A DNA stretch of 64,000 bases from Mobula hypostoma (Eukaryota): contig NC_086104.1 of assembly GCF_963921235.1 (NCBI RefSeq), positions 134,230,001 to 134,294,000 of the forward strand. Direction: 5' to 3'. Below the pieces are notes generated by a model. That model saw only the letters and a list, made by a program, of their open reading frames with translations. It made no database searches and was not told the origin of the DNA. The position numbers and the translations under genes were made by a program. Below, piece by piece: positions 1,850-29,485 of the stretch. The first letter of the stretch is position 1; each line of letters opens with the position of its first letter.

Positions 1850-2760
1850 CTGACCTGGGACTCTGGTTCCTAGTCCCCATCAAAACTAGTTTAAACTCTG
1901 CCGAGTAGAATCGGCAAATCTCCCATTCAGATTAGCTGCAAATCGTCTCTCTTGTACAGATCTCATCTTCCCTATGAAAGGTTCAATGATACACGAAATT
2001 GAAATCCTGCCCCCTGCACCTTCTCCGCAACCAATCATTCAGCTGTGTTACTATCCCATTCGTAACTCCACTAGCAATGGCGCAGGGAGTAATCCAGTGA
2101 TTAGAACTTTGGAGATCCGTCACTTCTGTCCTAACTTTTTAATCTCTCTGCATAGGGCCACTTCCTCTTTTCTGTCTATGTCATTGGTGACAATATGCTC
2201 TTACTACCCCCTTCCCCTGCATGGGAACGTACTTCATCTGTTCTGATACATCAGGAGCCCTAGAAGTTGGGAGGCAATGCCCTATTATGGTGTCTTTTTT
2301 GCCGCCACAAAATCTAATTTCTGTCTCACTAATTATCGAATTCCCTATAACTACCAGACTGCCTGACTATACCCTTCGCTGTCGAGCTCAGAGCCGGCCA
2401 CTGTGACAAAATATGACGGGTTATACCACCTATCAGTATCGAAAAGTGGTAACATGTGCCTGATGGGAACAATCACAAGGGACCCAGCCCTGACTTCTTA
2501 TTCCCCTCACCTCTTCTTTTCGTCGTCCTTCTATTGTGCGGCGCCTGTAGTCTCTGCGAGACCATCTCTCCAAAAATATCGTCCATAATTTCTTCAGCCT
2601 GAGTGCATACAATTGCAATTCCAACTGCTTCACTCGGCCAGTCAGGCTTTGAAGTTGGGTACACTTTCCCCAAATGTAGTCATCAGGTAAAAAGTCGGTT
2701 ATCCTGAATTCCCACATCTGTCAAGAGGAGTATTCCATCCTCACCTCTAAGTACGAGAAA
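1850..2760 (-). mobile_element. Degraded CR1 LINE 5' region (ORF1 zinc-finger/zipper and esterase remnant)
   Basis: ORF 2433..2717 MWEFRITDFLPDDYIWGKCTQLQSLTGRVKQLELQL matches the ORF1 start of the CR1 at ~48300-48500. Confidence 0.75.
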
Positions 2761-3344
2761 AAAATAAAATAAAAAAATCTTACCTCTTCTTACCTCTGCT
2801 TCCGCTAGTGCAAGCAAACGCTTTTTTGAGCCAATGCCTCGAAACTGTTGACAGACAACTCCGACAATGGCCGCATCGCGTGAGCTGACCTTTCATTTCT
2901 TTACCGCTGAGGATATACCTCTTGCATCAACATATTCAGCGCCACTGAAATGCAAAATGATTCCTTGCACGAATCTGCGAATGCTATCCTTTTTCCCGAT
3001 CTCCGTAGAGCTCGGATACGACATATGCTCCTGTAGCAGTTGCCGCCGAAAAAAAAATGAAATGGTCATTTTTTTTTATTTTGTATTGACTAAATCACCA
3101 GATTCTAATCTGGATCTCAGCACATTTTCACAACGCTTAAAATGTATGTATTGAAGACAAATGTTCGCGGCTTTCCAGGCTGACAGCATGGCCGCATTGC
3201 ACTTTTCAACGTGTTATCTTTCGCAGAACGCTACTAAACAGATACAATTGAAAGAAGGTGAATACTCAAACAACTTATCCTGTTTATCAGTTTACTCTGG
3301 TGTTAATGAAAGTAATTAACTGCCTTCAATTATTATTAAAACAG

Positions 3345-3659
3345 GGAAGGACGGACCACGACTTGTTGGCGGGGAGAGCAGATGCTCTGGCCGTGTGGAA
3401 GTTCTACACGGCGACCAGTGGGGTACACTTTGCGATGAATACTTCAACCTGGAAGACGCAGCCGTTGTCTGTGAACAGCTGCAGTGCGGTGCTGTAAATG
3501 ACACTCCTATCGGTGCTCACTTTGGCAAAGGAAACGGGCCGATGTGGAAGGACAACTACCGCTGTCTGGGAAAAGAGTCCCGATTAGCTGACTGTCCGGT
3601 CTCAGCCTGGGGTCAGAATAGCTGTTCTCATGGAAATGACGCTGGGCTCCGCTGCACTG
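3345..3659 (+). CDS. SRCR exon A (8-Cys group B domain)
   Basis: aaaacag|GG AAG GAC GGA CCA CGA CTT...TGC ACT G|gtgagt; 315 nt; GKDGPRLVGGESRCSGRVEVLHGDQWGTLCDEYFNLEDAAVVCEQLQCG...YRCLGKESRLADCPVSAWGQNSCSHGNDAGLRCT. Confidence 0.95.
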
Positions 3660-6600
3660 GTGAGTCGCAAATAATGTGGAATTGAAAGAAACTAATATTT
3701 GACCGTAGACTGTTACGGCAAGACGCTTTAATCTTCAGACTTAGCGATATTATATTTGCCACTAATGACTCGTGTTATGGATTGTAAAAGATTATAAAAG
3801 GTAATATGAAATTAAGGACCTCATATTAAATTGGATATGCAAGGCTAATATTTGGCATTATTCTGTGTTTCTTTTTGCTGTTACTGGCGAAAGCGAGATA
3901 ACAAATTCTTTCCACATGATGGTAAAACCCTCCTATTTCGATATATGAAAGAAAGTAAAGAGAGACTTCCGAATGGTCCCGTTTGTGCCAACTTAGAGCA
4001 TAGAAATCTACAGCACATCACAAGACCCCAAGCCCACAACGTTGTGCCGAACATGTAAACTACTCTCGAAACAGCCTAGGATTTCCCTAGCGCATTGCCT
4101 CTATCTTTTTTTCTAAGCTTCATGTACCAATCTAAAAAAGCTCTTAAAAGACCCTATTGATTCCGCTTCCACCTACGCCGGCGGCGCTGAATTCCATGCA
4201 CCCACCACACTCTGTGTGCACAAAAAGTACTGCTGATAGCCCATCAGTACCTATTTCCAAGCACCTTAAAACTATGCCCTCTTGTGTAAGCAAACTGAGC
4301 CAAGGAAAAAGCCCTTGGCTTTCCATAGGATCAATGCCCTTCAGCACCTTATACACCTCTATCAGGTCCCCTCAAGTCCCCCGTCGCTCCAAGGAGAAAA
4401 AGGCCAAGTTCTCATATAGTACGCCCTCCAATCCAGACAACATCGTTGTAAACCTACTCTGCACTATCTCAATAGTATCCACAATACCTCCTTTTGAGAG
4501 GTGACCCGCGCTGATCATGCTACGTCAAATGAAATCTGACCAAGTTCTCATATGGCTGTGATATTACGTCACGGCTCTTAATCCCACGGTTTATGAACGG
4601 AAACACACCATACGCCTTCTTAGCAGACTGTAAAACTCCGCAGCAGCATTCAGGTTCCTATGGAAACGGACCCCAAGATCTTTTAGACCGTCCACACAAC
4701 CAAGGTTTTTACCATTAATATTACATTCTCCTTCAATTTTGACCAACTAAAATGAACCACTTCACACTTATCTCGGTTGAACTCCATCTGCCGTTTCTCA
4801 GCCCTGTTTTGTATTTTATCGATCTCCCACTGTACCCCCTGACAACCGTCCAGATTACCTACAAAACCCCTAACGTTTGTATCATTAGCAAACTCACGAA
4901 CCTACCCTTCTGCTTCTTCATCTAGGTCATTCATAAAAATCACAAAGAGGACGGGTCGCAGAATATATCCCTGCGAACACCACTTGTCACCGAAATCCAC
5001 ATCAAATGCCTCACTGAATGCCATAAGGGCGGTGGCTGGCAACGGACCCAAGTACAAGACACAGACGCTGAAGTACTAGGGACAGGATTAGGATACAGGG
5101 CGATGGCAAGGACATAGACAGGAAAACCAGGAACCGGAACAATACTGGACATAAGAGCTAGGAGCCCGGGCTTGGACTCCGAGCCAGAGACTTGACAAGG
5201 ACCCAGTACCTGGGTCTTGCCTCTGGCTCGGACCTCAGAACTACGCAAGGACGAGGCTTGACAGGCAGGCAGGACGAGGCTGGAGTCTTCAGGCTAGAAG
5301 CTAGAGGCTAGAGACTTGGCTTGGCTTGGCAGGAGGCTCGAGGCTAGAGACTGGAGTCTACAGATTCGATGCTAGGCAAGAGGCGAGGCGAGGCTTGGCA
5401 TGAGGCTGGAGACTTGAGACTTGAGACTAGAGGCGAGGCTGGAGGCTTCAGACTTGAGGCGAGGCTAGAGGCTGGAAGCTGGAGACTGGAGACTGGAGAC
5501 TGGAGACGTGGCGAGACTGGAGACATGAGGCGAGGCGAGGCTGGAGGCTGGATATTTGAGGCGAGGCGAGGCTAGAGGCTGGAGACTTGAGGCGAGGCGA
5601 GGCTGGAGGCTGGAAGCAGGAGTCTTGAGACGATGCAAGGCTGGAAACAGGAGACTTGAGCCTTGAGGCGAGGCTTGGCTCCTCCTGGGCAGGTCCCGGA
5701 TCACCTGGGCAGGGCACGGATCACCACCCGACAGAGGCAAGGGACAGGAAGAGACAGAACCAACCCCAGGTAACGACAAGACGGCCTGGCTTACCTGGGC
5801 TTAGTCAAAGGACAGGAAGGTCAGAACCAACCCCAGGTAACGGCAAGACGGCGTGGCTTAACTGGGCGGAGGCAAGGGACAGGAAAGGAGCTAGGCACAT
5901 GGTGGCTCCAGGACCAGACAGCAAGACAAGGCAAGGTTACTGGCAAAGCAAGGCAAGACGAGACAGGGATTCTGGCGAGGAACAGAAGGCAGGGGAAGGG
6001 ACACAAGGAGTAAGGACAAGAACAATCCAGCAACCACGCCCTGGTCTCTGGAGGTATTTATGCAGCCAGCCCCAACTAGCATCAGCCGCCTCAATTAGCT
6101 CAACAACGACAGAAACAGGGTAGATAGGAAAACCTGGAGCAAGGGTCGATGGACCGGACCGTGAACCGGAATACGGACTTCACGGACCGGACTTTGACAC
6201 TGAAATCCATAGACATTACATCCACTGCTCTACCTTCATCAATGTGTTTTCTTATATCCTCAAGGAATTCAGTAGATTCAGAAGGCACGAAATACCCTTG
6301 ACAAAGCTATGCTAATCACCCCTAATCAGATTATGTTTTCTCCACGTGCTCGTAAATCCCGCTTCTCATGATCTTCTCCAAAACTTCTCCACAATTGAAG
6401 TAGGATTCATTGGTCAATAATTCCTTGGTTCTCTCTTCTCCCTTTGTTGAACAAGGGAACAACGTTTTAAAACCTGAAATGCACTGGCACTTCTCTCGTC
6501 CCTATTGGTGACGCAAAGTGGCTCAGCATTTTCCTCCCCAGGTTCCCACAGTAGCCTAAGTATATCCAATCCGTTCCATCTAACTTAATGTTTTTCAAAA

Positions 6601-9600
6601 GTCCAGCACACCCTCGTTCTTAATACCTATATGATCCAACGTTCCAGTGTGCTGTACGTCATCCCAACAACTACCATTTTTTTTCCCCGGTGAATGCTGA
6701 AGCAAAGCTTTCATTAAGTACCTTAGCTACCTCCTTTGAGTCGATGCGCACGTTTCCATTATCGCACCTGAGTTGTCCTATTCTCACACGGCTCACTCAC
6801 TTGCTCTTCACATACTTGAATGCATTGAGGTTTTCCTTAATCCTGTTCACCCTTTCTGGCTCTCCTAATTCCATTCATAATCTCCCTCCTTGCCACCTTG
6901 TAATGTTCTTGAACCCTGATGGATACCTTGTTTCTTGAAGCTTTCGTAGGTTATTTTCTCTTTTTTTATTGTATTTTCTACATCCTTTTGTATTCCAAAA
7001 TTCTTCAAACTTACTTTCCTTCCCTCAACGAATGCAGCATACCTATGCAGAACTCCAAGCAAATGTCTTCTTTTCTTCCTAGCATTTCCCTCAGAACATC
7101 TGCTCCTAATTTATCCTCACAAGTTCATACCTAACAGCTTTACATTTCCCGCTACCTGAACTGAATATTTCCCAAAATTGTCTGCTCCTATCCCTCTCCA
7201 GACCTATGGTGAAGGAGATATATTGTGGTCACTACCTCCAAATTGCTCTCACACCGAGAGAGCTGACTCCTGATCAGGTTTCATTCCCAATATCATATTA
7301 AGTACAGCCTCTAAATAATGTTATCTACATATCCTACCGAAAAACCTTACCGAACACACCCGATAAACTGTACCCTATCTGAGCACCTTCTGATATCGAG
7401 ATGCCTATCAATATTTGGAAAGATAAAATCTCCCATCACAACAACCCTATTATTATTATTGCACCGTTGCATAATCGGCCTCCACAGCTTCCCATCGATA
7501 TCCCAGTTACTCTCGGTAAACACCCAGTAGTGTTATTGCCTCGTTCCCGTTTCGGACTTCCAGATTGGCGCTAGCCAGGTGTAAGGGTCTATGATACATA
7601 GAGGTTTGATCAATACTTCCAATAGCTGAAAATAAAACTTTATCTATACGCCTCATATTTACCGTCTACGTTACTGAGACGAGGCTCAGAATTTGCTCAT
7701 TTAACTGTAATATTTATGATAAAACATACTAAATTGCTTGTCTCCTAAGTAGCATGTGGGAAATTAATGTACCAATCAACCATTTCAGCTAATTGCTGAA
7801 AATGCATGCTATATTTTGGCCTCCTAATAACCGGTTACCAAACTTATTCTATGTTATAGATGAAGTATTGTCTCTGAGATTAACCGATGGGTTAAGCCGA
7901 TGCGACGGCCGTGTGGAGGTTTATGATGGCGGTACCTGGAACATAATGCAGGATAAAGTATGGAACATTAATGACGCAAATGTTGTCTGCAGACAACTGC
8001 GTTGTGGCAACGCTACATTCGCCTACAACTCCTCCAAACTGATAGACAGCGTATGGCCCGTGAAGGTTATTGACGTTCAATGTGAAGGAAGCGAGTTGCA
8101 CCTCCGCAATTGCAGAAAGTCGATGATGAACCGGTCTTTTTCTGACATCACCGGCGTTGGTGTTCTGTGCTCAGGTGAATAATGTTAAAAAGGTTGAAAT
8201 GGGAATTTGTAAACTGGCATGACCATCGTTGTTTTGTCGTGTATCGAGTAATTTAGAGTCACTGACACATGCAAATTGATATCTGATAATCAAAGCCCCT
8301 TTGGCAGGATTTTCATATTAAGCTACACTCATCCCATGGTTCCGCAGCTCTGTCTCGGAGACTCTACAACTTATTCTGATACCAATGGAATTTACAGTCC
8401 GCAATTCATCTGCCACTTTTCCTATGTAGGGGAGGTGACTGAAAAGATGAATACAGAGGAATACCATGTCTACTCATCTCTCCTTCACATAGCTACTAAA
8501 GCAAGGTGATTTCCATTTATTGCAAACGTCCAGCGTGGCGACAAACCCATTTAAACATCTTATTTTATGGCACACTTTTCAAATGATTTTCATTATAGGA
8601 TGAGGAAATGAAAACAAAAATCACACATTGGAGTGGAAGGAGGAAATCGAGCATTTAAGTGAGGAAGGAACATAATCTGTGAAGAGTAATTTACGAGGAG
8701 CTGATTAGAGGAAGGGGATATAGTCAAATTAAATAAATAAATAAACAAACAAACAAACAAACAAATAAATAAATAAATGTTAATTCCACAACATGTGGTG
8801 CAACTTGCGATTGTTAAAATTCCTGTTTAGACAAGTCCATGTCTGAGTACATTTTTACATATCAATATGTCACTAAAGCAATCAAGCCTATAAGATAGCA
8901 GTATTCAGCAAGTATGCAAAGTTCGCACAACACATTAATTAACTATGTGACCAACACAGATGATTTGATTTGAATTGGGCTAAGTTCTGAAGAGGACTAC
9001 AGAGCCTACATCGAATGTGCAAATCCAGCTGAGTTAGGATTAGTTGGTGTGGGTCACACTAATCTCAGATCTCTATCGAAACCTATACGTGGCCTATTGG
9101 CAGAAGATGGGCCTCAAGCCACAAAGAATGTACTCTTCCTTTCCATTTTGTGCAGCCTTTAGTGTGTTTGTCATGATAAAGGAGTGATCCAGTATTTAAT
9201 CGCGGCAAAGTGCTCCATATTGAGGCGGCCAGAACTCAGACAAACCTAGGAACCTACTTCTCAGATGAGAAACTGTGTTTGACAATGTGATCCTGGCGGG
9301 CATCCCATGGCCAAAGAATTATGCTTCCAGCACATCCCATCATGGAAGGCACCAGACGTACCTGTGTCCATGACAGGCATAAAGATGGAATGACAGACCA
9401 GCGTTCAAATGTACACCAGACACTACTATGATTCCTCAGCTGGAAACAGACTTCAAGACTCGTGGCGTTTATTCAGTAGTTTTGGTTTCTTGAAAGAATA
9501 GCAACTTCAGAATTTCGACGACATCATTCGACAGATATTTTAAAAGTATAATTTCAAGGGCAACAGCAGAAATGATAACTGTGTGTTGCATTTTGTCTGA

Positions 9601-12292
9601 ACTGAGTGATTAACTTCCGATATTATTGATCCTCAGGCCATTTGCAAATTCGACTGTCCGGAAGTGAAGATCCGTGTGCGGGTCGTCTTGAGTTTTATTA
9701 CAATGGCACTTGGGGCACGGTTTGTGATGACTCCTGGGATCTGGATGACGCTAACGTTGTCTGCAGGCAACTAAGTTGCGGATATGCTTTGGAGGATAAA
9801 ACTCGCCGTTATTGCGGAGAAAGAACTGCTCCAGTTTGGCTGGATGAACTGAGATGTTCGGGTAACGAGACATATCTCTGGGACTGTCCCTCAGCACCAT
9901 GGGGCAAAACTGATTGCAGTCATAAAGAAGATGTGACAGTTACGTGTTCTGGTAAGGGTAATTTCAATTTTTGATTATATGCTGTAATCAGTGGTCGCAG
10001 AGATGTAATAAAATATTTGAAGCACCGAAGGAGATAATTGGGCACAAATGATCTGTGTAAACTGCATAAGTGTTCACCAACTCAACAACAACAGGCTCAT
10101 TCCATGTGAATATCTACCCATGGCGCCCCAATCGATTTTACAGATTTATGGATGTTGTCCAAATTTCCTGAAACATATCTTGGAAAACTCATGGTTTTGC
10201 TGCACAGTGACTCGCTTACTTTCGTAACATTTAGTTGAAAAGCCAATAAACAGGAGAAGCACATTCTGCTCCATATGATTCAAATATCTTCGTATTGTAT
10301 CGATTGTATTCCCTCAAATTTAAACTCGTTTCTTTCAGGGAACGGCACTGGCCCTTTTTTTTATATATAACTCACGATTTGCATAAACTTTCATTACAGG
10401 TTTCCGATAACAACAGCTCATCTCTACTTTTCGTGTTAAAATAAACACGGATTGAAATTTGCAATCTCCGACTTGCAGCATTATCACCTCAAACAATTCT
10501 TCTATTTTTCCCGTTACTAGTGTTCGAACGTTCACCGCCTCGATTTTTGACGTAACTCTAAATAATGTTACATATCAAACCCGAAGGATCAATCGTCCGT
10601 ACGAAAATAAAGTCAAGTTTATTCCGGAATGAATTATACTTAATTATGTTGAATTATGTTCTCCTTTCCATCTTGAATTTTCTTTTGTGAAATGTCTCCG
10701 CAACTCCCTACCTGATTGAACAAAGTGCTTTGAAAACAATCAGGTGAAATTACTCTTGCAACCCAACATAACTTAATCATTCGAAAAGACACGGACAACA
10801 GGAAATTAGCAAGATTTTAGTCGCAACTCAAGAGGATGTGGGATTTGCCGAACAAAGTGGCTAATTGTGATAGGGCTTTGTTCTGTATTTCGAGTATTAT
10901 CGATGATCAGAATAAACTGCCATGTTAGCAAAATATGCTGTTCATTGTCGACCCCAAGTCATGGAGACACGGCCACATTAAACAAATAAAAAAGAAACAT
11001 AAAACGCAGCAAAATTCTGAACATATTAAGAGACAGAACCGTTAAAGTCTGATACAGGCAGACAGAATAACAAAAATAGCTAACGATAGAAAATAGAAGA
11101 TTCACTCTGCAATATTTAGTGTGCCCAGAGGAAAAAAAAATCACTTAACTAAAGGCAGACTAGGCATAGTATAGGGAATGAAATTTCCTTGAAGCTGGAA
11201 TCTCGTTTGATATCAACCTTGGCAAAATCAGAATACAGATATCCTTTGTGCTGTCAAGCATTTTATGGATTTCAGCATTGGAAAGCCTACAATAAATCCT
11301 GCAATATATTTGAATCAAGAACGTAAGTAAAGATGTAACCCAACTGGAAATAATATGTTACGATTAGGCTGATAGAATAGCTTAAAGTAATACTGTAGTC
11401 TCTCATTTATTTGTGCCATATAGTACCATCAGCCCATATTTATTCGGTTGGGTCTCAATAATAGACCAGCAACCATGGACAAGCGATCCCCATAAAATCG
11501 CTGAAAGGCAATTGCTTCTCATTGATCGAATGCAGAAGAGATCACCGTTTATATCCGTCCATTTATTATCTGCAGCAATGTTCACATTTCTGCTCAAGGT
11601 CAGAGGAATAACATTGTTTCCTTGCTCCACATCATTGATAGCACTAAGCCTCGCATTCAGTCATTTACCATTGTATTTTCGTGAACCGCAACAAGATTGC
11701 AGATTTAGGTATATATTTTTCTACAGCACAATTTGCTCCCATCACTTTCTGCCCTGTTTTCAGAAATTCAATAGAATATCTACTTTGCGTTTCCGAGTGT
11801 GCTTATCCCTGCTCATCTACTGCTCCCTACCGAGGGGTTGCAATGATATATGCATTTCTTTTTTATGTTGTGTATCGCCGGACGTTTTGTGTTCTGAGAA
11901 AGAGTCGTTTGCTGTTGCAAGGAAATGTTCCAACGGCTTTTGTATCGGATGTTTCTTTTCAGAGTATAAGCAAATGCGCCTAGAGGACGGCAAGAATCCA
12001 TGTGAGGGGAGAGTAGAGGTCTGGTACAATGGGACCTGGGGAACAGTCTGCTCCACGAAATTTGATGCCAAGTCTGCGGAAGTGATCTGTAAACAAATGA
12101 AATGTGGACCCATGAAATCTATTTATCCTGGCTCCTATCAATACGGAATAGGACTTGGGCCCATATTGTTAGATGAGATCGAATGTACTTCACACGAGTC
12201 GACCCTTTGGCAGTGTCATTCACAACCGTGGGGAAAACACAGCTGTGACCATTCTTATGATGCAGGTGTTAAATGTCAAGGTACTTAATAAA

Positions 12293-12323
<31 letters not shown>

Positions 12324-18300: not shown

Positions 18301-21300
18301 GGCAAATGAAATTCAATGTTAGAAAGTACATGCGGAGTCATGATAAGTACTGGCGAGTTCTGAGCGTGAGTATTGTGTACAGTTTTGGGTTCCACATCTC
18401 AGATAAGATCTGCTGACATTGGAGATGGTTCAGCAGGATGATTCCGGGAATAAAAATGTTTAATATGAGGATAGTTTGATGGCTCTGTGTCCGGACACGT
18501 TCGGATTAAGAACGATGGAGGGGGATCCCACTAAAACCTTTCACGATTTGAAGGCCTAGGCAGAATTGATGTGGAATGATGTATCCCACGGTGTGAGAGT
18601 GAAGGACAAATCGGCAGAGCCTTGGAATAAAGAGTTGTCATTTAAAACAGAGATGTGGAAAAAAGTCGATGGCCAGAGTGTAGTAAATTTGTTAAGCTTG
18701 TTACTACAGGCAGCTGTGGAGTCCAGGTCTTTGGGTATATTTAATGCAGTGATCGATATTTTCCTGATTGGACAGGGCACTGGACAAGAGAAAGGCCGGG
18801 TAGTGGGTGTGAGTTCAGGGGGAAAAATGATCAGCTATAAGCTAGTGTGGAGCAGATTCGATGGGGGAAATGTCTTAATTCTGCTAGTATGTCTTCCGGT
18901 CTTCTGGTGTTAAAATGTCTATTTTGTTGTACTGTATCCAGGTCTCCCACTGCGTCTTTTCGCTGGCAGTCATAGATGCGCCGGGCGATTGGAGGTACAG
19001 TACAATAATACCTGGGGCACGGTGTGCGATGACTCCTGGGGTCTGGCCGATTCCCATGTAGTCTGCAGACAGCTGGACTGTGGCCGTGCTGGCTGGGCTC
19101 CAGATATACCTATAATTACCCAGGCATACGGTGATATTTGGCTGGATGAAGTAAAATGCACGGGAGATGAATCTTCTTTTTCCAGCTGTCTTTCCTCAAT
19201 ACCCGGCCATCACGATTGTGATCACAAGGAAGATGTCATCGTTGTTTGCTCTGGTAGGCGTTGTTGTACATATTCTTCATTCTTTCCAAATAGATTTTTT
19301 CGTCTCATAACTAGAACAGAAACTGAAGAGATGATTTTGCAGTAAATTCTGTGTAATATGTCCACAGATTCCGGTTTGATTCCCACTGACAGCAATATCA
19401 CAGGTATGTACTATTAATGACATTTTAACGTTAGAGTTCGAGTCTCTGATGTAGATACTGATATATGATTATAGTAATATACCAAATGATAAGATTATGA
19501 TAAACTTTTTACAATTTATCTGTCATATTAATTCGCTTCACAAGTGGCTTACGTAGGACTTCCAGTAAAAGTATGATCTCCAACTCCAGACAGATTTCTC
19601 TGTGCTATTACTGTCCTGATACTCTGGAAAAAGTGTTGGTACCCTACCAGTAATAGAAGTTCAAATTAAATTTATTTTTAAAGGAAATATACTTTACTTA
19701 CATAAACCTGAGTTTGATTTCCTTGCTGGTATTCGCAGAAAAGAGAAATACCACATGGAACCAGTGAAGACTTTATCCACAAATACACTCGAGCAAACAA
19801 AGCGTGAAAGACAAGAAAGTGCAAATGTGAAAAAAAAAACAAAACAAATAAACAGACACACAAACCAGCAAATAAATAAATAAATGAGTAAAACATAAAC
19901 ACATAAATGAATAAATTAACAAATGCATGAATGAATAACAAAATACATACGTGCATATTGAGAGCATCAGTTGTAGAGTCCTTAAAAGTGCGTTTCTGGA
20001 TTGTAGGTTCAGTTCTGAGTTGGGGTGAGTGAAGTTATTCAACCTTTTCTTGTGGGCTTGATGTTTGCGAGTAATAACTATTCCCGAACCTTCTGCTTTT
20101 GAACTTAAGGGTTGGGTGTCTCATTTATGACTGCAATAGCGCGAGCAGTGCATGCCCGGATGGCGAGGGTCCTTGATGTTGGACACCGATTACCTGCACT
20201 TTGGGGATCCATCATAATATTGAAGAAGTTGTATCACGTCTGAAATCAATATAACATTTGTAATTTGGAGAAGTTTCGTAACAGTGCAAATTTGTCCTGC
20301 AGGCCATCAATATTTACTTAGAATTTGCGGTTCTACTTCCTGTAATTTCATCTGGTTTCATAATAACTAGAAACCTTGTGTGGGCCTAGGCTGCAAATGC
20401 ATTCTCTATGATGAATAAAATTTTGCAGTTGCTGGTTACATACAGGACGTCATTGATATTAATCGGCATCTTCGCGACAATTTCGGGGATTATTGCATTC
20501 CATTTGGGTTGCTTCAAAATTGAGCCATCCCAAACCAAAGCCACTCTGCGGTTATCAGATGCGGACAGTGAAACATACAATGGCAGAAATCTCGGTATAT
20601 TTTATTCCTGGAGTTGTTTTCTTCAAAGTAATCCCATACCACACCGGCATTCCACCTCTACCTCACCCCTCATCCCCATCTACCCTCCCCAAACCACCCC
20701 CGTTCCAGTTCCAGAGTATTACGGAAATTAGGAAGTTGTTTCAGGCGAGTTTATCCTCCTGTGATATTATGTGATCTGGAGTCAATGCTAGTGATTTGCA
20801 GAAGTACACTTAATATCAAAGGATTCATTGAGATGTTCCTCTTTTAAAATGCATAGGAAGATAATCGAGAAAACTCACGACAGTTCACGAAACACAACCT
20901 GTAATTAAAATCATTTAAACTAGCTTCAGTATGTTGACTTTGCCTCTACAACGCTTGTTTTTAATTTTACCATTAATATTTATTTAAAGGATTTGGAACC
21001 GGGACCCCCTCGATTATGGCTATTGTCTGCATAACCCTTGGAATCATCTTCGTCGCTGAGTTATTCGTTCTGATAACGATAGCACGCAGAGGGTCAGCAA
21101 CAAGTGGTTAGGATCAAAATTACTACTCCAAATGATTTGATTTGCTGCACTTTTGGAAGTTCAGTTTTGTGTGTTTATATGTAAACTTAAGTAATGCTTT
21201 ACCTCGTATGTTGAGATGTTGAGCTGCATTCAGTGAGATACTTTAAACGGAGAATTACTGCCCATCAAAGCACAAGGTTCCATGATAATTTTTCGAACGT

Positions 21301-24300
21301 AGCAGAAAGCGAAATTTGCAGTGCATATAAAAAGAATTCACATCCCCTGGACGTTTTCATGTTTCATTCTACTTGAACATTACCCTACAGTGGATTTAAT
21401 TTGGCGTTGTTGACAGGTGAAAAATGAAATTTCGTATCAAAATGAAATCAGATCCCTAAAAAGTGATAAATTAATTATAAATATAAGACACAAAATAATT
21501 GATTGCATAAGTTCTCACCCGTTTCAATTTAGTATTTAGCAGATGCACCTTTGGCAGCAACTACAGCCTTGAGCAGTCTAGATACGTCTCTATCATCATT
21601 AAATATCTGGACACTGCAAATTTCCCCATTTTTCTTTACAAAACAGCTCAAACTCTGTCATATTACATGGAGTTCGTTTGAGAATAGCTCTTTTCAAGTC
21701 CAGCCACCAAGACCCAATTAAATTGAGGTCTGGACTCTGACCTGACCATTCCAGGACATTGTTGTTTTAAGGGATTCCTGTTTAGCTTTGGGTTTATACA
21801 TAGGTTTATTGTCTTGTTCGAAAACACATTTTCTCCTAAGTCGCAGTGCTATTGCAGACTGCATCAGGTTTCCCTTGAAGAATCGCTCTGTATTTCACTA
21901 CATTTATTTTACTCTCTACCTTCATACGCCTTCCGGGGCGGGTTTTAGTAAAGCATCCCCAGAGCATGATGCAGCCACACCCATGCTTCACAGAAGGGAT
22001 GGTGTATTTTTGATGATGTCCTGTGATTGTACAAAAATATGATTTTTGATTCAGGAAACGATAGAACGGTACCATCTGAATTTATAATTCCCCACATGCA
22101 TAACGCCAAACTCTTGCCAAGATTATATGTAAGTATTATTTTAACTGGTAGCTTTCTCTTTGTACTCTCCAATAAAAGTGCAACTGGTGAAGCACACGGG
22201 CAACAATTGTTGTATGCGTTGTCTCCCCATCTCAGGCACTGAAGATTTTAGCTCCTCTAGAGTTGTTACTAGTCCCTGGGTAGCCTTTCTTACTAGACCC
22301 CTTCTTGCTCGGTCACTCAGTTTTTGAGGACGGCCTGCTGTAGGTAGATTTACAGCTGAGCCATATTATTTCCATTTCTTGATGATTGAAATACTGTACT
22401 CTAAGGGATATTGAATGACTTGGAAATCTTCTTGTAACCATCTCCTGAATTGTGCTATTCAATAACCTTTTCTCGGAGTTGCTCAGAGAGTTATTTTGCT
22501 TTCATGCTTCAGTTTTTGCCTGGATACAGACCCACCAGCAGTTGCAGCTTCCAAATATATGTGTATATTCAATGCAGTCAATTGAAACACCATAACTGCA
22601 CACAACCTTCCAAAAACAGATCTCCATTTAACTACTTATGTGACTTAAAAGAATAGCTGGTTGTCTCAGTGATGATTTGGTGAGTCATATTGTGCGTGTG
22701 TGGGGGGGGGTGTAAATGCATGTGTTTTATTTTATATGTTATTAACGTGGATTACTTTGTAGAGATCTATTTTCACTTTGTGCGAAAGAGAAATTTTCTT
22801 TTAATCAATGAGAAAGAGTCAAATTAACTCCAATGCATTTCAATATTGTGGGACGATAACACATGAAATCATCAGCTGTGTGGGGGTGAATACTTTATAT
22901 TGGCATTGTAGTTTGGGAAGTGCTGCTTTACTGTTCATCTTAGTGTTATATCTCGATTCATTGGATATCTGTTGTTTATTCTTTTCTAGGTTCTGCTACA
23001 GTAACTCAAAAATTATGATTTGATATCATATTAAGTCGAGGCGTTTTCCCACATTTCTTCATCATGGAATACTTACTTTCCGTTTCTTTACAATTGTTCA
23101 ACAAAACTAAACCTTTCTATTGCATGTGCGAAGGTGACAAGCCCGCAGAGCTTACAGCCTGTCTTCATCTACCGGTATAATTGTTGGCACTGCGCCTATC
23201 TAGTAATGGTAGTCAACTTCCCATCAATTGAACTGAGTTATGTATCTATGATGGAAGGAAAGCTGGGAATATATTCAACTTGATGCAACCTATATTTGAT
23301 CGTTATGATGCGATAATGATTTGTTCGTATTTGCAGTGGGACCATTCAGCGACCACGTTCACCAACTCATTGCCTTGATTTACATCCCTTTTTCCTTTCT
23401 AATTTAATCACAATGGCTTAAATGTTTTATTAAAATTTACTGGATTAATATGTTAATATCACCTCTCTCTTCAGCAGGTCCACTGGCGAGTGGCAGGGAT
23501 TCACCTTTTGGCTTTTATCAAGCAATTTATGACGAGATTGAAAGTATTTCACAGGGGAAGAGCTTCACTAAAGCACAAGATTCAGGTGTGTGTGTTGCAT
23601 TTGCAATCCACTTCTGTTACCGATTGATATTGTCCTCGGCATTCCAATATCGCTATAAAATCAAGACATATGAAATAGTATATACTTCCAAACTGAAATG
23701 AAAACAAAATAAATAGGAATGCAGATAATAATCTCAAGATATTCTGCGGATGCTGAAAATCTTGAGCAATACAAGCAAAATGCTGAGGGCACACAGCAGG
23801 TTAGGCGGCACTTATGGACACGAATAATCACTCGATATTTTGCACCCAAACGCTTCCACAGGATTGCAAAGAAGCAGACAGAAGCTAAAATAGGAGTTGG
23901 AGACATGGGAAAGGAAGGCAAGTGGAGAGGATGTGATGGGGAAAGAAGCTTCGTGGCAGAAGAGAATAAAGTAAGAGGCTGGGTGGCGATTTGTGAATGA
24001 GGAAGAAGGCTGAAAAGGATGAAATATTGTAGTTCCAGAGTAGAACAAAGTTTTGCTTTATCTTCCGTCAACTCTTGAAGAATTAGAGACTCCGATATAT
24101 TTGAAATTGTTGTGCATTGAGAAGGATAGAGATATCCAGACGACATCTCTCCTAAAAGGGGTCGAAATACCATAGTCCTTTCAATCCCCATGTCCCTCAG
24201 AAATTGTTGACATTCTATTTTCTCATTCAATCAAAACTTTTCTCTGCAATTTCAAGCACGCTTCAATCTCAACACTTCTGCGAAGAACGGAGGAAATTAG

Positions 24301-27300
24301 AACATCGAATGCCCTGAGCATTACTGGAAAATGCAATCACTTATGCCACGATGTTGTGCCAATCATTTAATGAACTCCAATGCCAATCTAAGACTGTACT
24401 GCAGCACAGCCGTGAATTTGTCTATCATTACTATGCCTGCTGAAAAGATTGTTAAATGGTCCTAACGTATTTGCCTGTGTTAGCCTTGAAAGGGTGTTTC
24501 GCATACCCAGCTCTCTCTGGGAAAGAAGTTACTTTTCACAGTCCTGCCTCCTCCTCTGTGACATGTTCCTCTCGTAGCATTAAGATTATTCCCCCATTGA
24601 AATAGCTAATTATGCACTGGGAAAATAATCTGCATATCTCCATGTCATATCCTATAGTCCAGACAGCAGCTTCGTAAATCTCTGCATACTATCAAAATTT
24701 CTTCATCCTTCCTTTCCTAGGATGACCCGACATAAACACAATACTCAGAAAGTGGGCTACAAGGTAAATACCACCTTTAAAAATCCACTCCTTATTTTGC
24801 CCAGAAATGCATGCGACACGCTCTTTTATAGTTCCGAGGTATATTACCGTTGTATTTCTTGAACAAAGAAACTAGACATGCAAAGATAAGTCATAACACC
24901 AAAAGACCATAAGATATAGAAGAAGTAGTAGGCCATCTGGAACTCCAGTATGCTTCGCCATTCAATCAAGGTTGATCCAGTTCTTCCAGTCATCCCCACT
25001 ACCTTGCTTTCACCCCATACGATTTGAGGCTCTGGCTAATCAAGTACCTATCTATTTCTACCTTATGGACATCCAACAAAATGGCCTCCGCAGCCGCTTG
25101 TGGCAACAACTTCTTCAGATTTACCACCCTCTGCCTAAAGTAATTTATTTGCATCTCAGTCCTAAAAGGACGTCCTTCAATCCTTCAGTCGTGCCCTCTT
25201 GTCCCAGAAATCCCTACCATGGAAAATAACTTTGCCATATCTAGCAACACACATAAAAATTGCTGGTGAACGTAGATGAACAGGCAGCATCTATAGGAAG
25301 AGGTACAGTCGACATTTCGGGCCGAGACCCTTCGTCAGGACTAACTGAACGAAGAGATAGTAAGAGATTTGAAAGTGGGAGTGGGAGGGGGAGATCCGAA
25401 ATGATAGGAGAAGACAGGAGGGGGAGGGGTGGATCTAAGAGCTGGAAAGTTGATTGGCAAAAGGGATATGAGAGGATCATGGAACGGGAGGCCTAATCTG
25501 CTCAGGGCTTTTAACATTCGGAATGTTTCACTGAGGTTCCCGCTCATTTTCCTGAACTCCAGGGAATACAGCCCACGTGCTGCCAGACGTTCCTTATACG
25601 GTAAACCTTTCATTTATGGAATAATTCTCGTGATTTTTGCTCAACCCTCTCCTTTCTAAGATAAGGATGCCAAACTGCACACGATATTCTAAGAATGGAC
25701 TCAAAAGTGTGTTATAGAGCCTCAATATCACATCCCTGCTCTGATATTCTATACTTCTAGAAATGAGTGCCAACATTGCCTGCGGCTTCGTCACAACCGA
25801 CTCAATCTGGACTTTAACCTTTAGGATATCTTGCATAAGGACTACCAAGTACCTTTGTATATCTGCATTTTGAATTGTATTCCATCTAAATAATAGTCTG
25901 CCTGTATATTTCTTCCACCAAAGTGCATGACCATACACTTTCCAACATTGTATTTCATTTGCTACTTCTTTGCCCATTCTCCTATACTGTATAAGTCTTT
26001 CTGCAGACCCTCTGTTTCCTCAACACTACCCGCTCCTCTAACCTATCTTTGTATCATCGGCAAATTTAGCCACGAATCCATCAATACCGTAGTCCGAATC
26101 ATTAACATACATCGTACAAAAGTAGCGGTCCCTACAACGTCCCCTGTGGAACTCCACTGTTAACTAGCAGCCAGCCAACCAGAATAGGATCCCTTTATTA
26201 ACACTCACTATTTTCTGCCAATCAGCCAATGCTCCGAACACGCTAGTAACTTCCTAGTAATTCCATTGGCTCTTATCTTGCTAAGCAGCCTCACGTGCGG
26301 CACCTTGTCAAAAGCCTTTTCAAAATCCAAGCGCACCACGTCTACTGCATCTCCGTTGTCTACCCTGCTTGTAGTTTCCTCAAAGGATTGCAGCAGGCTT
26401 CTCAGACAGGATTTTCTTTTCCGGAAACCCTGCCGACTTTGGCCTATCTTTACATGCGTCCCCTGGTACTCTGTAATCTCATTCCTAACAATCGATTCCA
26501 AAAACTTCCCAACCACTGAAGTCAGGCTAACAGGTCTATAATTTCCTCCCACCCTTCTTAAATAGCAGAGTAACATTTGCAATTTTCCAGTCATCAGATA
26601 CAATTCCATCATCTATCGATTCTTGAAAGATCATAGTTAATATCTCTGCAATCTCTCCAGCTAATTCCTTCAGAACTCGTGGATGCATTCCATCAGCAGC
26701 GATTTATCCATCCTCAGACCGTTCATCTTCCTGACTACCTATTCAGTCATAACTTTCACTGCACAGACTTCACTTCCCTGACACGCTTGAATGGTCGGTA
26801 TACTGCAGGCGAATTGCACTGTGAAGACTGATGCAAAATACGAATTCAGTTCCTCTGCCATCTCTTCATCTCTCATTACAATATCTCCAGCGTCATTGTT
26901 ATCGGTCCCACGAGGAATTCTGCAGATGCTGGAAATTCAAGCAACCCACATCAAAGTTGCTGGTGAACTCAGCAGGCCAGGCAGCATCTCTAGGAAGAGG
27001 TACAGTCGGCCTGAAACTTCGACTGTACCTCTTCTTGGAGATGCTGCCTGGCCTGATAAATTCACCAGCAACTTTGATGTGTGTTGCTTGTTATCGGTCC
27101 TATAGCTACACTCGACACACTTTTAACCTTTGTATACTTAAAACAGTTTTTAGTGTTTTCCTTTGTATTAGTCGGCAGTTTCCTCTTAAAACTCATCTTC
27201 TCCTTCCGAATGACCTTTTTGGTTTCCTTCTGCAAGTTTTTTAAAAGTTCCCAATCCTTTATCTTCCCACAGCTTTGGCTTCCTTTAGTGCCCTCTATTT

Positions 27301-29485
27301 TGCTTTTACATTGGCTCTGACTTCATTTGTCAGCCACGGTGCTGTCCTTCTTCCCTTTGAAAATTTCTTCATCTTCTCAATATTTTCTACCTGGCCATAT
27401 GATATTTCCAAGCAATTTCATTAATTTATTTATTGCTAATGTATAGACCCAATTCCAAGAATTATGGTGAAAAACTGTAGTGATACGAACGTGGCCCACT
27501 ACTTATCCACCCAATGCCCATCCCCTCTGCTCAAAACACTGGAAATAAGAATAGTAAGATAACTGATGTGTCGTACACATGCAGATTGTTTGACGTGCAG
27601 TTCACTGTGCCATACCTTCCTTGTGAGGGTGTCTATTGTTTTACTGAAATGTATTCAGCAATGATGACTTATGAGTACATATATTACTATCATTAGGATG
27701 ATGATGGTTTGATAAATTCCTTCACAGAAAAAAATAAATAAAACAAACATCTCCAACAGCTATCTTTTCCATTCACCTTTAGTCACTGGATCCATTGATT
27801 GCATCCATCAAATCGAATATTATACTAGCGATAATATTAATGGGGAGTGTCATACCACAGAAGGTCCTGAAGAAAACTCTTCCAGTATTTGCGGTTGGTA
27901 CCCATTCTTTTTCTCAATGTTTCCATCTTTAGTTCAAAGTTCAAAGTATTTTTTTAACTCCTCGTGCATAAATGGCAACATATACAACAGTGCGATTTGT
28001 TTACTTGCGGGCATATATAGTAAATAGGGAAATTACTGTAGAATCAATGAAGCACAAGAAAATTTGCATATGCTGGAAAGCCGAGGTATTCAACAGGACT
28101 GAAAATATATGGGGGGGGGGGGGCGGTATTGGAGGAACATGTATACAGTGGTAGGTGATAAGTGAAACTGGGTTTTGGGGCAAGATGGCCTAATGAACTG
28201 CGGAGCTGATTGATGAAAGTGATAAGGAGATGAAGGTGGGTGGGGGAACGCGATAGAAGAGGACACACCGTAATCACGGGATATGGTAGAATACCCAACA
28301 GACGTGCAGATGAAGTGTCCCATCACATAGAAGGACAGCTGCCCGCCAAGAATTACAGTGACGACGACCTGTCATCGCAGTTGTTCTACTTGTTCCGCTT
28401 GCAAGGAGAAGTATCACGAGAGAAATGAGCAGTGAGGGATGTCTCGACAAGGTCGTCACGTTAAAAGCAATCACTCTGTAAAGCGGAGCGTGTGGGGTAG
28501 GGAGGGAGAGTTTTGATTAGTGGCGGACGTTACGTAAAATTAAGTGCCGGACGCGGCGGCAGTGGAGTAGAAGGAGAGAACAAGAGTAGGCAGTACCTGG
28601 TGTGGCGGTGAACTGACGGAGTGAGAGCTGACCTGCACTAGATGCGGTTGAGGGCAGTGTTGGTGGTAGAGGAAGCCAAGCCCCTTTCTTAGAATAAGGA
28701 GGATATCTCACTACTTCTGTATTGAAAGCCCTCATCCTGAGGACAGATGCGGCCAGAGCGGAGGAAATGAGAGAAGGAGTAGCATTTTCACAAGTGACAG
28801 GGTCGGCGGACATATTGTCCAGGTAGCTGTGAGAATCACTGCGTTTATCAAAGAAGGAATGAATGACATACAGCTCTAGAAAACAACCAATGTACAAACT
28901 TCTTTCTATCTGTGATCATGACCTGACAAAAAAAAGCTTGCAGTTCACATCATGATGTGACAATGTAACTGCATGTTTTATTTTTCATGAAATAAAGTAC
29001 AATAGGCCTGTGATCAAATTGATATAGGTCTATCTTCTGCAGTCAAATCTTGCATTAAATAAAGTTTTCAGTTCCCCCTTCACTTCACTTTGAATAGCAA
29101 GCCTTAATGTGATATGGATTCGTAAGCTTCAAGAGTAACTCGGTAGTTCAGAGTCCCCTGACGTTTGCTGAACATCGCTATTATCGGGAACATTGTTTGT
29201 ATTTATATTTGTTCCTATATATGGTTCCTGGCGTCTGCAATGACATTGTGAAAGAAAGTACTCATTCCTTGTGTTTTGCGAACGTGACTAACCGTAGCTC
29301 CAGTGATATTCTGATACCCAATGTGCCGACATTGCTCTCAACTTTCAGTCTACAATACCCGCACTACCAGAAATATATTCAGGAAACCATTGATCGTGTT
29401 GTCTTTTACTACGTATTCGTTTCTTGTATGCTTAGAACACCGTTTCCAAAAAGACATCGTGTCCGTGTCGGCGTCCAATGAGTAG
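3345..29485 (+). CDS. Multi-exon group-B SRCR type-I transmembrane receptor (CD163/WC1/SCART-like), 5'-incomplete: SRCR x4 - linker - SRCR - stalk - TM - cytoplasmic tail
   Basis: Ten exons (3345-3659, 7860-8174, 9637-9951, 11963-12280, 12471-12545, 18942-19253, 19368-19403, 20990-21106, 23475/23478-23585, 27783-27893) have AG/GT borders, are all phase 1-1, and join into one open frame. No signal-peptide exon was seen in the window. The terminal exon is tentative. Confidence 0.88.
5019..6199 (-). mobile_element. Solo LTR (Gypsy-type), copy 1
   Basis: Termini TGCCA...TGACA; 5-bp TSD CTGAA (5014-5018, 6200-6204); ends homologous to 36021-37216. Orientation is inferred. Confidence 0.9.
5270..5680. 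repeat. Degenerate 5-7-mer purine-rich minisatellite inside the solo LTR (gaggctg/gagactg/gaggc/gacttga)
   Basis: Directly visible; it generates the low-complexity ORFs at 5344-5779. Confidence 0.9.
7860..8174 (+). CDS. SRCR exon B (6-Cys domain lacking C2 and C7)
   Basis: gttatag|AT GAA GTA TTG TCT CTG AGA...TGC TCA G|gtgaat; 315 nt; [45 protein letters not shown]...VQCEGSELHLRNCRK...GVGVLCS. Confidence 0.93.
8728..8778. repeat. Compound (TAAA)n(CAAA)n(TAAA)n microsatellite
   Basis: aaataaataaataaacaaacaaacaaacaaacaaataaataaataaa. Confidence 0.9.
9637..9951 (+). CDS. SRCR exon C (8 canonical Cys plus 1 extra)
   Basis: cctcag|GC CAT TTG CAA ATT CGA CTG...TGT TCT G|gtaagg; 315 nt; [45 protein letters not shown]...DCSHKEDVTVTCS. 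Confidence 0.96.
11963..12280 (+). CDS. SRCR exon D (8-Cys)
   Basis: ttttcag|AG TAT AAG CAA ATG CGC CTA...TGT CAA G|gtactt; 318 nt; [45 protein letters not shown]...SCDHSYDAGVKCQ. Confidence 0.95.
12298..12323. repeat. (TA)n microsatellite just downstream of the exon D donor
   Basis: Directly visible. Confidence 0.9.
12471..12545 (+). CDS. Inter-domain linker exon (not in ORF track)
   Basis: tttttttgtcaacag|AT GGA AGT ATT...TTA ACA G|gtgagt; 75 nt, phase 1-1, consensus donor; DGSISSRNNDKVCEQVNDSPIGTLT. Confidence 0.8.
13145..13683 (+). mobile_element. Rex1/Babar LINE 3' fragment
   Basis: SVWHGNFPVSDHTILQRVVKTAQWIIGTQLHSIENIYHKRCL (ORF 13204..13464); ends with AATAAA and an (aatct)n tail. 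Confidence 0.85.
13787..14775 (+). mobile_element. Young 5'-truncated CR1 LINE (open RT C-terminal frame)
   Basis: IYINDLDEGIKCSISKFADDTKLGG...RSHLEYCVQFWSP...; (tttctatg)n tail; nearly identical to 32041-33030. Confidence 0.96.
14850..18915 (+). mobile_element. Old degraded CR1 LINEs (a 3' fragment ~14850-15415, then a near full-length relic with ORF1 esterase, APE and RT)
   Basis: ORF 15868 LIHIATSDIG...EFIELGRKL...AVILGLLTVP (SGNH-like ORF1); APE and RT remnants with many frameshifts; CR1 3' end just before exon E. Confidence 0.8.
18942..19253 (+). CDS. SRCR exon E (membrane-proximal, 8-Cys)
   Basis: tatccag|GT CTC CCA CTG CGT CTT...TGC TCT G|gtaggc; 312 nt; [47 protein letters not shown]...DCDHKEDVIVVCS. 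Confidence 0.96.
19368..19403 (+). CDS. Short stalk exon (not in ORF track)
   Basis: tccacag|AT TCC GGT TTG ATT CCC ACT GAC AGC AAT ATC ACA G|gtatgt; 36 nt, phase 1-1; DSGLIPTDSNIT with an N-glycosylation sequon (NIT). Confidence 0.75.
19655..20205 (-). mobile_element. Degraded Rex1-like 3' fragment with internal (AAAT)-rich tract
   Basis: aagttcaaattaaatttattt tail plus a 3' body resembling other Rex1 ends. Confidence 0.5.
20990..21106 (+). CDS. Transmembrane exon (not in ORF track)
   Basis: tatttaaag|GA TTT GGA ACC...ACA AGT G|gttagg; 117 nt; GFGTGTPSIMAIVCITLGIIFVAELFVLITIARRGSATS, a hydrophobic helix followed by RR stop-transfer residues. Confidence 0.85.
21319..22908 (-). mobile_element. 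Tc1-family DNA transposon, defective (~1.6 kb)
   Basis: Imperfect TIRs cagtgcatataaaaagaattcac / gtgaatactttatattggcattg(ta); minus-strand transposase motifs PSVKHGCGCIMLWGCF (ORF 21836..22075) and NVLEWSGQSPDLNLI (~21715-21760). Confidence 0.9.
23475..23585 (+). CDS. Cytoplasmic exon 1 with tyrosine motifs
   Basis: ctctcttcag|cag|GT CCA CTG...GAT TCA G|gtgtgt; AGPLASGRDSPFGFYQAIYDEIESISQGKSFTKAQDS; lies within ORF 23450..23701. Confidence 0.85.
23735..24000 (-). mobile_element. Highly degraded Penelope-like pLTR/3' region
   Basis: attctgcggatgctgaaaatcttgagcaatac..aaaatgctg..cagcaggttaggcggca followed by a purine-rich tract; same layout as the 25243 and 26909 copies. Confidence 0.6.
25244..25492 (-). 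mobile_element. Penelope-like pLTR fragment inserted in CR1
   Basis: Interrupts the CR1 at catatcta|atctg; contains the hammerhead motif and a purine-rich tract. Confidence 0.8.
25307..25342 (-). ncRNA. Minimal type-I hammerhead ribozyme motif
   Basis: Minus strand AGUC-CUGACGA-A-GGGU(CUCG)GCCC-GAAA-UGUC^GACU: complete CUGANGA...GAAA core, helix I AGUC/GACU, helix II, GUC cleavage triplet. Confidence 0.8.
26909..27087. mobile_element. Palindromic Penelope pLTR-derived insertion with 13-bp TSD
   Basis: Inverted arms 26938-27008 and 27020-27090; ttgttatcggtcc is duplicated at 26896-26908 and 27088-27100. Confidence 0.88.
27783..27893 (+). CDS. Cytoplasmic exon 2 (not in ORF track)
   Basis: ttttccattcacctttag|TC ACT GGA TCC...ATT TGC G|gttggt; 111 nt, phase 1-1; VTGSIDCIHQIEYYTSDNINGECHTTEGPEENSSSIC. 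Confidence 0.72.
28060..28860 (-). mobile_element. Degraded Penelope-like element 3' fragment (RT thumb region to pLTR)
   Basis: DKRSDSHSYLDNMSADPVTCENATP (ORF 28517..28897) resembles the PLE motif K.TDSHSYL.Y.S.HP..CK.AIP. Confidence 0.78.
29436..29485 (+). CDS. Candidate terminal coding exon
   Basis: ttcgtttcttgtatgcttag|AA CAC CGT TTC...GAG TAG gives EHRFQKDIVSVSASNE* in phase 1 and is followed by AT-rich unique sequence. No homology support. Confidence 0.3.

Follow-up and report, generated by a model that had tools for sequence, protein, structure and literature searches.

A probable CD163-family receptor gene, nearest to SCART and WC1 by architecture, in the ray Mobula hypostoma

Does a ray gene that is named in public annotation after DMBT1, a secreted protein, encode a membrane receptor of the kind known from WC1 and SCART, with a tyrosine in its tail through which it might signal? 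The question is raised by a 64-kb stretch of the Mobula hypostoma genome (contig NC_086104.1, positions 134,230,001 to 134,294,000 of the forward strand; hereafter the window, numbered from its first letter). In an earlier note on this stretch, a gene at 3345-27893 had been described as having five group-B SRCR domains, a transmembrane segment containing CITLG and a tail with AIYDEI, and it had been likened to WC1 and SCART and read as a co-receptor that combines pattern recognition with signalling. The evidence indicates that the gene is probably a cartilaginous-fish member of the CD163 family, nearest to SCART and WC1 by architecture, with several paralogues on its chromosome; it would encode a type I membrane glycoprotein, and it is proposed to be a signalling co-receptor.

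A six-frame scan of the whole window, which has no N runs, returned exactly five SRCR-like open stretches, all on the plus strand. Each of them (S1 to S5) matched the Pfam SRCR family (PF00530; E values from 1e-19 to 3e-34) and forms one exon of 312 to 318 nucleotides with AG/GT borders and phase 1-1. Single phase 1-1 exons are the classical layout of group-B SRCR genes, and the five domains that had been predicted were thus recovered. Eight group-B cysteines are present in S1, S4 and S5; S3 has nine, and S2 has six, being without C2 and C7. Ten exons fit the span 3345-27893 exactly, as the earlier note had it: S1 to S4, an interdomain exon, S5, a stalk exon, the transmembrane exon and two tail exons all have AG..GT borders, phase 1-1 and lengths divisible by three. 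A last coding exon is in frame with the second tail exon, and the spliced frame from S1 to the stop comprises 719 codons with zero internal stops. The exons, and one further element downstream, are as follows.

3345-3659, plus strand: S1, SRCR domain of 'b' type with eight cysteines; AG/GT, phase 1-1; Pfam E 1.9e-30; first exon of the gene in the window
7860-8174, plus strand: S2, 'n'-like SRCR domain with six cysteines (C2 and C7 lost); Pfam E 1.3e-19
9637-9951, plus strand: S3, 'd'-like SRCR domain with nine cysteines; Pfam E 2.8e-34
11963-12280, plus strand: S4, SRCR domain of 'e' type; Pfam E 1.1e-31; an internal cryptic donor after 12088 is used by the NCBI model
12471-12545, plus strand: interdomain exon between 'e' and d', 25 codons (75 nucleotides), one cysteine; AG/GT; 100% identical to residues 273-297 of NCBI protein P0253
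18942-19253, plus strand: S5, membrane-proximal SRCR domain of d' type; Pfam E 4.9e-30
19368-19403, plus strand: stalk exon, 12 codons (36 nucleotides); AG/GT; covered by a spliced contig; 100% in P0253; equivalent exon in skate
20990-21106, plus strand: transmembrane exon, 117 nucleotides; a 25-residue hydrophobic helix followed by RRGS; CITLG at 21028-21042; 100% in P0253
23475-23585, plus strand: cytoplasmic exon 1 (tail 1), 111 nucleotides, with FYQAIYDEIE; AIYDEI at 23522-23539, YDEI at 23528-23539
27783-27893, plus strand: cytoplasmic exon 2 (tail 2), with IEYYTSD; similar to the tails of sharks and rays and, at the syntenic position, to skate DNA (E 2.6e-10)
29215-29330, plus strand: possible relic of a third cytoplasmic exon; weak, non-significant similarity
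29680-29816, plus strand: final coding exon, ending in a TAA stop (29814-29816); similar to the C-terminal ends of Rhinoraja P0286 and P0304 (E about 1e-5) and, in syntenic order, to skate DNA (E 1.3e-5)

The CITLG and AIYDEI motifs were both found where the gene layout places them, in the hydrophobic exon and in the first tail exon. Four exons had been said to be absent from the list of open reading frames of at least 60 amino acids; these are the interdomain, stalk, transmembrane and second tail exons.

The counts of five SRCR domains and ten exons are correct for what is visible in the span, but they are minimum counts, because the stop lies at 29814-29816 and the 5' part of the gene is outside the window. 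All full-length relatives carry a signal peptide and two extra N-terminal SRCR exons, seven SRCR domains in all. No signal peptide or N-terminal SRCR exon was found in positions 1-3344; these parts of the gene, with the two further SRCR exons, probably lie upstream, and the window holds the 3' two-thirds of the gene. At the 3' end, tail 2 has an alternative donor at 27884 that also preserves the frame. In the stretch at 29215-29330 the shark motif VPGDYDDV appears as VPGVCNDI (YDDV to CNDI), and its polypyrimidine run ends in ATG, not AG, leaving no acceptor. Because the similarity was non-significant and an acceptor was lacking, this stretch was treated as a possible relic and not as an exon; it is possibly a dead third tail exon, and the frame is kept when it is skipped. 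No paralogue exons were found in the 30-64 kb part of the window.

Why, then, does this gene carry the name of DMBT1? Six of its exons (S2, S3, S5, stalk, transmembrane and tail 1) show 100% identity to an M. hypostoma protein in NCBI, P0253, which is called "deleted in malignant brain tumors 1 protein-like"; this identity bears out the cartilaginous-fish origin suggested in the earlier note. The P0253 model (1383 residues) spans 178 kb. It begins inside the intron before S2 (window position 7802), exits S4 via the cryptic donor after 12088 and, after tail 1, joins exons of a downstream paralogue; it is a chimera of two paralogues. A 417-residue NCBI model stops at window position 3685, 4117 bases short of where the next model begins. 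This position is the stop reached by reading through the S1 donor, so that in the annotation S1 closes an upstream fragment of this gene. At least three more family members (P0312, P0153 and the second half of P0253) are on the same 162-Mb chromosome, and the automatic public names of family genes are DMBT1-like, M130-like and WC1.1-like.

The name would, if taken at its word, imply a secreted mucosal agglutinin. It is attached automatically to the window's own protein and to many relatives, and single DMBT1 SRCR domains do score about 66-121 bits against the window domains. DMBT1 and SSC5D share with the ray gene group-B SRCR domains on single phase 1-1 exons, and this shared feature is the source of the automatic name. 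They differ in being secreted, with CUB/ZP or mucin-like regions and without a transmembrane segment or tyrosine tail (SSC5D had no curated reference in the sample). In the ray gene the last SRCR domain is followed by just a 12-codon stalk, a transmembrane segment and a conserved tyrosine tail, with no room for CUB/ZP, and its SRCR exons abut without the short spacers of DMBT1. Together with the domain trees described below, in which no DMBT1 domain enters the b, c, d, e or d' clade, these features make a DMBT1-like protein very improbable, and by sequence that reading is disfavoured.

Homologues were collected with an S5 search of 1.84 billion representatives, which was dominated by giant multi-SRCR proteins, and the results were then screened for transmembrane and tail motifs; a search with a skate transmembrane-tail query, aimed at short transcript-derived proteins, returned the query alone. 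In the thorny-skate genome the end of S2, S3, S4, S5, the transmembrane exon, both tail exons and the last exon are collinear and in the same order, and the skate gene model joins S5, stalk, transmembrane and tail 1 exactly as in the proposed ray model. In sawshark, protein P0141 (1003 residues, with seven SRCR domains) corresponds one-to-one and in order to the window exons from S1 to tail 2, the interdomain and last exons being left out of this comparison, with identities of 60-73% in the SRCR exons and 37-51% in the transmembrane and two tail exons. Tail 1 is 50-69% identical to elasmobranch orthologues that carry YQAIYEEIE. In full-length elasmobranch proteins a spacer of 22-28 residues, with one cysteine in every copy read, precedes the last SRCR domain. 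A full-text literature search found no description of WC1/SCART/CD163c-alpha-like genes in cartilaginous fish; the study of the family by Herzig in 2010 went back no further than chicken and platypus (PMC2906472).

Public models of this family are also broken in Amblyraja radiata. There, model P0021 runs past the tail exon 1 donor and stops, and the upstream SRCR exons have been split into another model; the conserved tail-2 and last exons (L001 14224-14328 and 15389-15496) lie 0.5 and 1.7 kb beyond and are not annotated in P0021.

Which branch of the family the gene belongs to was addressed with maximum-likelihood trees of 79 and 120 rows, the 120 SRCR domains coming from 15 proteins. These were the window gene, three elasmobranch relatives, turtle DMBT1, sheep WC1.1, Tasmanian devil SCART1, marmot CD163/M130 (names as given in the sources) and WC1-like proteins of camel, echidna, turtle, Bombina, coelacanth, sturgeon and gar; CD5, CD6, SSC5D, CD163L1 and human or mouse SCART were outside the set. 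A per-domain phylogeny had been named beforehand as one of the tests that could overturn the proposed identity. The window domains grouped with the e, d' and b types of WC1, SCART1 and CD163A and not with DMBT1, whose domains formed a group of their own outside the b, c, d, e and d' clades. Placement and support for each domain, for 79 and then 120 rows, were as follows.

S4: 'e' type (WC1 d5/d10, CD163A d8, SCART1 d7); 98/92 and 100/94
S5: d' type (WC1 d11, CD163A d9, SCART1 d8); 96/91 and 71/82
S1: 'b' type (WC1 d2/d7, CD163A d5, SCART1 d3); 81/84 and 80/83
S3: 'd' group; 52/84, weak, and no resolved placement
S2: with SCART1 d5, the 'n' domain; 99/93 and 77/0

Independent of the trees, and in support of the 'n' assignment of S2, the loss of C2 and C7, with its flanking motifs, is common to S2, its elasmobranch orthologues, SCART1 d5, turtle d10 and Bombina d4. 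Previous work has described the 'n' domain as specific to CD163c-alpha-like molecules (Herzig 2010, PMC2906472). Among the family features listed in the same study are membrane-proximal 'e' and d' domains, a separate exon for interdomain sequence and the motif Y-(Q/E)-(D/C/E)-(I/L) (Herzig 2010, PMC2906472). In the ray gene we found single-exon group-B SRCR domains, membrane-proximal 'e' and d', an interdomain exon, a transmembrane segment and a tyrosine tail. Typing of the domains by per-domain ranking against the PDB was also tried and gave no clean assignment; best-stretch mapping agreed with the tree for S1 alone (= CD163 SRCR5).

The membrane-spanning and cytoplasmic parts were compared separately. 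A profile of this region was built from 16 bony-vertebrate WC1/SCART-like proteins alone, with 1000 segment-wise shuffles as the control (transmembrane segment and flanks as separate pools; 990 returned a score). The window sequence scored 32.2 bits, against a shuffle mean of -0.6 (standard deviation, 2.3) and a shuffle maximum of 12.0; its transmembrane-tail module is therefore homologous to the WC1/SCART module. Other elasmobranch members reached up to 47 bits and marmot CD163A reached 15.0; by sequence, the ray module is closer to that of WC1/SCART than the CD163A tail is.

From sheep WC1 to sturgeon, many multi-SRCR membrane proteins have a transmembrane segment of the type C-(I/L)-(I/V)-L-G-A-L-L-F and, about 22-28 residues past it, (A/G)-(V/I/L)-Y-(E/Q)-E-(I/L). 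The elasmobranch family reads V-C-I-T-L-G, then YQAIYEEIE (YDEI in the window copy) and then EYYTSD; the WC1-like tails of tetrapods have EYYT(S/G)D as well. The window transmembrane exon aligns with skate and shark transmembrane segments, and its tyrosine is 28 residues after the membrane, versus 21-33 in the other proteins listed. An extra motif of the YDDV/YEDV type is found in gar, tarpon, sturgeon and some sharks. Rhinoraja proteins have HDDA, without the tyrosine, at the place of the shark YDDV; the second tyrosine motif is thus missing there too, and its loss may be a batoid trait.

The tree and profile results bear on whether the protein could instead be an endocytic macrophage scavenger receptor like CD163A, whose ectodomain would take up ligands and in which YDEI would be a YxxPhi internalisation signal and not a kinase docking site. 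YDEI does fit YxxPhi, several relatives are named M130-like by NCBI, and the CD163A transmembrane-tail also fits the WC1/SCART profile weakly, at 15 bits. CD163 (M130) chains were moreover the top-scoring solved structures for every window domain, but this ranking is inflated because the scores of nine CD163 domains add up, and tail exon 1 had no match in the PDB even though a full-length CD163 chain is present there. The ray b, e and d' domains stand apart from all three bony-vertebrate lineages, which leaves room for a CD163A-like function. On the other side, none of S1 to S5, nor d1/d2 of the paralogues, groups with the h, i, j and k domains of CD163A (d1-d4), of which 'k' has been called diagnostic of CD163A/b (PMC2906472). 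In addition, S2 bears SCART-type 'n' features, and on the WC1/SCART profile the score of the ray tail is double that of the CD163A tail. An endocytic receptor of the CD163A kind is therefore considered unlikely, and the SCART/WC1-like co-receptor is preferred.

Splicing of the gene was checked in contigs of three possibly-RNA runs that carry the species label, over 18900-24000 and at very low depth. In run X3, a 221-nucleotide contig covers S5 at 19014-19234 with zero mismatches, and one contig skips 19253-19367 with GT..AG ends, which confirms the S5 donor and the stalk-exon acceptor; contig depth was zero in the intron around this joint. The earlier note had called for the junctions to be confirmed by RNA. 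The S5-to-stalk joint was indeed spliced, but the joins to the transmembrane and tail exons were seen in no contig and are based on phase, the open frame, conservation and the gene models of other species.

The intron between the transmembrane exon and tail 1 contains a high-copy repeat at 21294-22832 with the remnant of a Tc1/mariner-like transposase on the minus strand. Contig depths over it summed to hundreds or thousands in each of the three runs, with identities of 90-95%; this depth reflects the repeat and is not expression of the receptor gene.

Could this copy be decaying? A copy in a tandem array that has lost its function, and that yields at most a low level of aberrant messages, would suit the very low RNA depth, the lack of the transmembrane exon in any listed run and a putative third tail exon that has neither an acceptor nor its tyrosine motif. 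It would also suit the failure of NCBI annotation to produce a single-gene model, given the read-through of the S1 donor, the start in an intron, the cryptic S4 donor and the 178-kb run into a paralogue. However, all eleven exons are open, with canonical borders on the ten that are internal. S1, S3, S4 and S5 each retain an intact cysteine framework, and the cysteine loss in S2 is common to orthologues and thus old. The absence of the second tyrosine motif, shared with Rhinoraja, may be a trait of batoids, and one RNA contig is correctly spliced. Decay of this copy therefore appears quite improbable.

Several observations weigh against the assignment to a SCART/WC1-like signalling receptor. 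The tail motif is YDEI, with D at the place where the published pattern has Q or E; the change is conservative, and the other elasmobranch members listed read YEEI at this place. The transmembrane and tail exons occur in no RNA contig of the three runs over 18900-24000, and a run search with the transmembrane exon listed no holder, which is not proof of silence. The 'n'-type placement of S2 drops to 77/0 in the 120-row tree, in which the 'd' type of S3 is not resolved. No 'c'-type domain was found between S1 and S2, or in the seven-domain relatives, and d1/d2 of the full-length paralogues group neither with the m/l domains of SCART1 nor with the 'a' domain of WC1. The elasmobranch domains that fall in the b, e and d' clades group apart from those of WC1, SCART1 and CD163A, so that the gene may be co-orthologous to all three and not SCART-specific; the family retains the WC1/SCART kind of tail.

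The identity proposed in the earlier note therefore stands as homology, on the strength of the trees, the cysteine loss in S2 and the transmembrane-tail profile, but not as strict orthology to WC1 or SCART1. The lack of a 'c' domain and N-terminal domains that are not m/l make the gene SCART-like and not a strict SCART1 orthologue. Neither a WC1 a1 domain nor a second cassette was found in the window or in the seven-domain relatives, which have one cassette, of probable b-n-d-e-d' type.

Comparison with the better-known receptors shows how far the likeness extends. SCART1 and SCART2 (CD163c-alpha) are, like the ray protein, type I, with single-exon group-B SRCR domains in the order n-d-e-spacer-d' at the membrane. 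An 'n'-like domain without the C2-C7 pair, the C-x-x-L-G transmembrane segment and a tyrosine of the YxE/D-I/L type at a similar distance are likewise shared with SCART. In SCART1 a 24-residue spacer directly precedes the last SRCR domain, as in the ray gene. SCART1 differs in having eight domains (m-l-b-c-n-d-e-d'), whereas the ray family has seven, without 'c' and with two N-terminal domains that are not m/l. The ray transmembrane segment, unlike that of SCART, carries a conserved Glu/Asp that is in no bony-vertebrate member sampled.

WC1 shares with the ray gene the b, d, e and d' domain types, the interdomain exon, the C-x-x-L-G transmembrane segment, the presence of several paralogues in the genome and a YEEL-type tyrosine, 24 residues past the membrane in WC1. 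It differs in its a1 domain and repeated b-c-d-e-d cassette, giving 6 or 11 SRCR domains (11 in the sheep protein), whereas the ray protein has one cassette in which an 'n'-like domain replaces 'c'. CD163 (M130) is a member of the same family; its C-terminal half has the b, d, e and d' types in common with the ray gene, and no solved structure scored higher. In contrast to the ray protein, its N-terminus carries the four additional domains h-i-j-k, its spacer lies between 'c' and 'd', and its tail is of the YREM/YQEM type, which is weak on the WC1/SCART profile and has no direct match to tail exon 1.

How might such a receptor work? By homology to WC1, SCART and CD163, the protein would sit on the cell surface as a type I receptor, with an SRCR ectodomain that binds ligands of microbial origin or other polyanions. 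Engagement of ligand or of the antigen receptor would then, by the same analogy, lead to phosphorylation of the membrane-proximal YDEI tyrosine. This tyrosine, in a pYEEI-like context, is a likely Src-family kinase substrate and SH2-type docking site and would be the counterpart of YEEL in WC1, so that the receptor may act as a signalling co-receptor. Both the function and the phosphorylation of WC1 have been shown by experiment (PMC2906472 and work cited in it), and phosphorylation of the YEEL tyrosine was needed to potentiate T-cell activation (PMC2906472). Diverged paralogues on one chromosome could widen the range of ligands, as has been proposed for WC1. In cod, a T-cell cluster positive for T-cell receptor gamma/delta expresses a CD163-like 'm130' gene (PMC9276791). 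The cod gene makes expression in T cells plausible, not shown, and expression of the ray receptor on gamma-delta T cells is likewise plausible.

A further feature lies within the membrane. The residue ten places past the transmembrane cysteine is a glutamate (codon at 21058-21060). An acidic residue was present at this place in 19/19 elasmobranch transmembrane segments (15 Glu and 4 Asp, from 11 genera) and in 0/33 bony-vertebrate WC1/SCART-like segments in the sample, which mostly have valine there. In the T-cell receptor complex, CD3 chains pair with T-cell receptor chains inside the membrane by means of acidic and basic transmembrane residues. It is conceivable, though doubtful, that the acidic residue in cartilaginous fish serves assembly within the membrane with a partner that has a basic transmembrane residue, which would place a germline SRCR receptor inside an antigen-receptor or adaptor complex. 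If this were true, an SRCR pattern-recognition receptor would not be limited to acting through its tyrosine tail.

Two kinds of repeat were observed elsewhere in the window. The intron between S1 and S2 contains a G+A-rich minisatellite at 5402-5885 with units of 14 to 67 bases, which explains the long overlapping open reading frames on both strands there. Fragments of LINE-type reverse transcriptase with the motif YLDFQKAFDKVPH are scattered through the window, and from 32 to 64 kb such fragments were all that was found, with no further SRCR exon. They lie at the following positions.

13728-14696: LINE-type fragment with YLDFQKAFDKVPH
25594-26612, minus strand: LINE-type fragment with YLDFQKAFDKVPH
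31799-32926: LINE-type fragment with YLDFQKAFDKVPH
33719-34659: LINE-type fragment with YLDFQKAFDKVPH
44685-45823: further LINE-type fragment with YLDFQKAFDKVPH
49518-50909: further LINE-type fragment with YLDFQKAFDKVPH
55942-56882, minus strand: further LINE-type fragment with YLDFQKAFDKVPH
61597-62178, minus strand: further LINE-type fragment with YLDFQKAFDKVPH

For public annotation, the locus points to a systematic error: genes of this family are named DMBT1-like and, in the M. hypostoma genome, are split and fused across 178 kb. For the family itself, the locus and its relatives from at least 11 elasmobranch genera show, as far as sequence can, that the d-e-d' cassette, the C-x-x-L-G transmembrane segment and the YxEI tail would already have been together in the jawed-vertebrate common ancestor. 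This would date the receptor type back to that ancestor. Rays, like ruminants, keep several copies on one chromosome, and the gene may serve as a marker for asking if SRCR co-receptors have been tied to gamma-delta T cells for as long as the T-cell receptor has existed.

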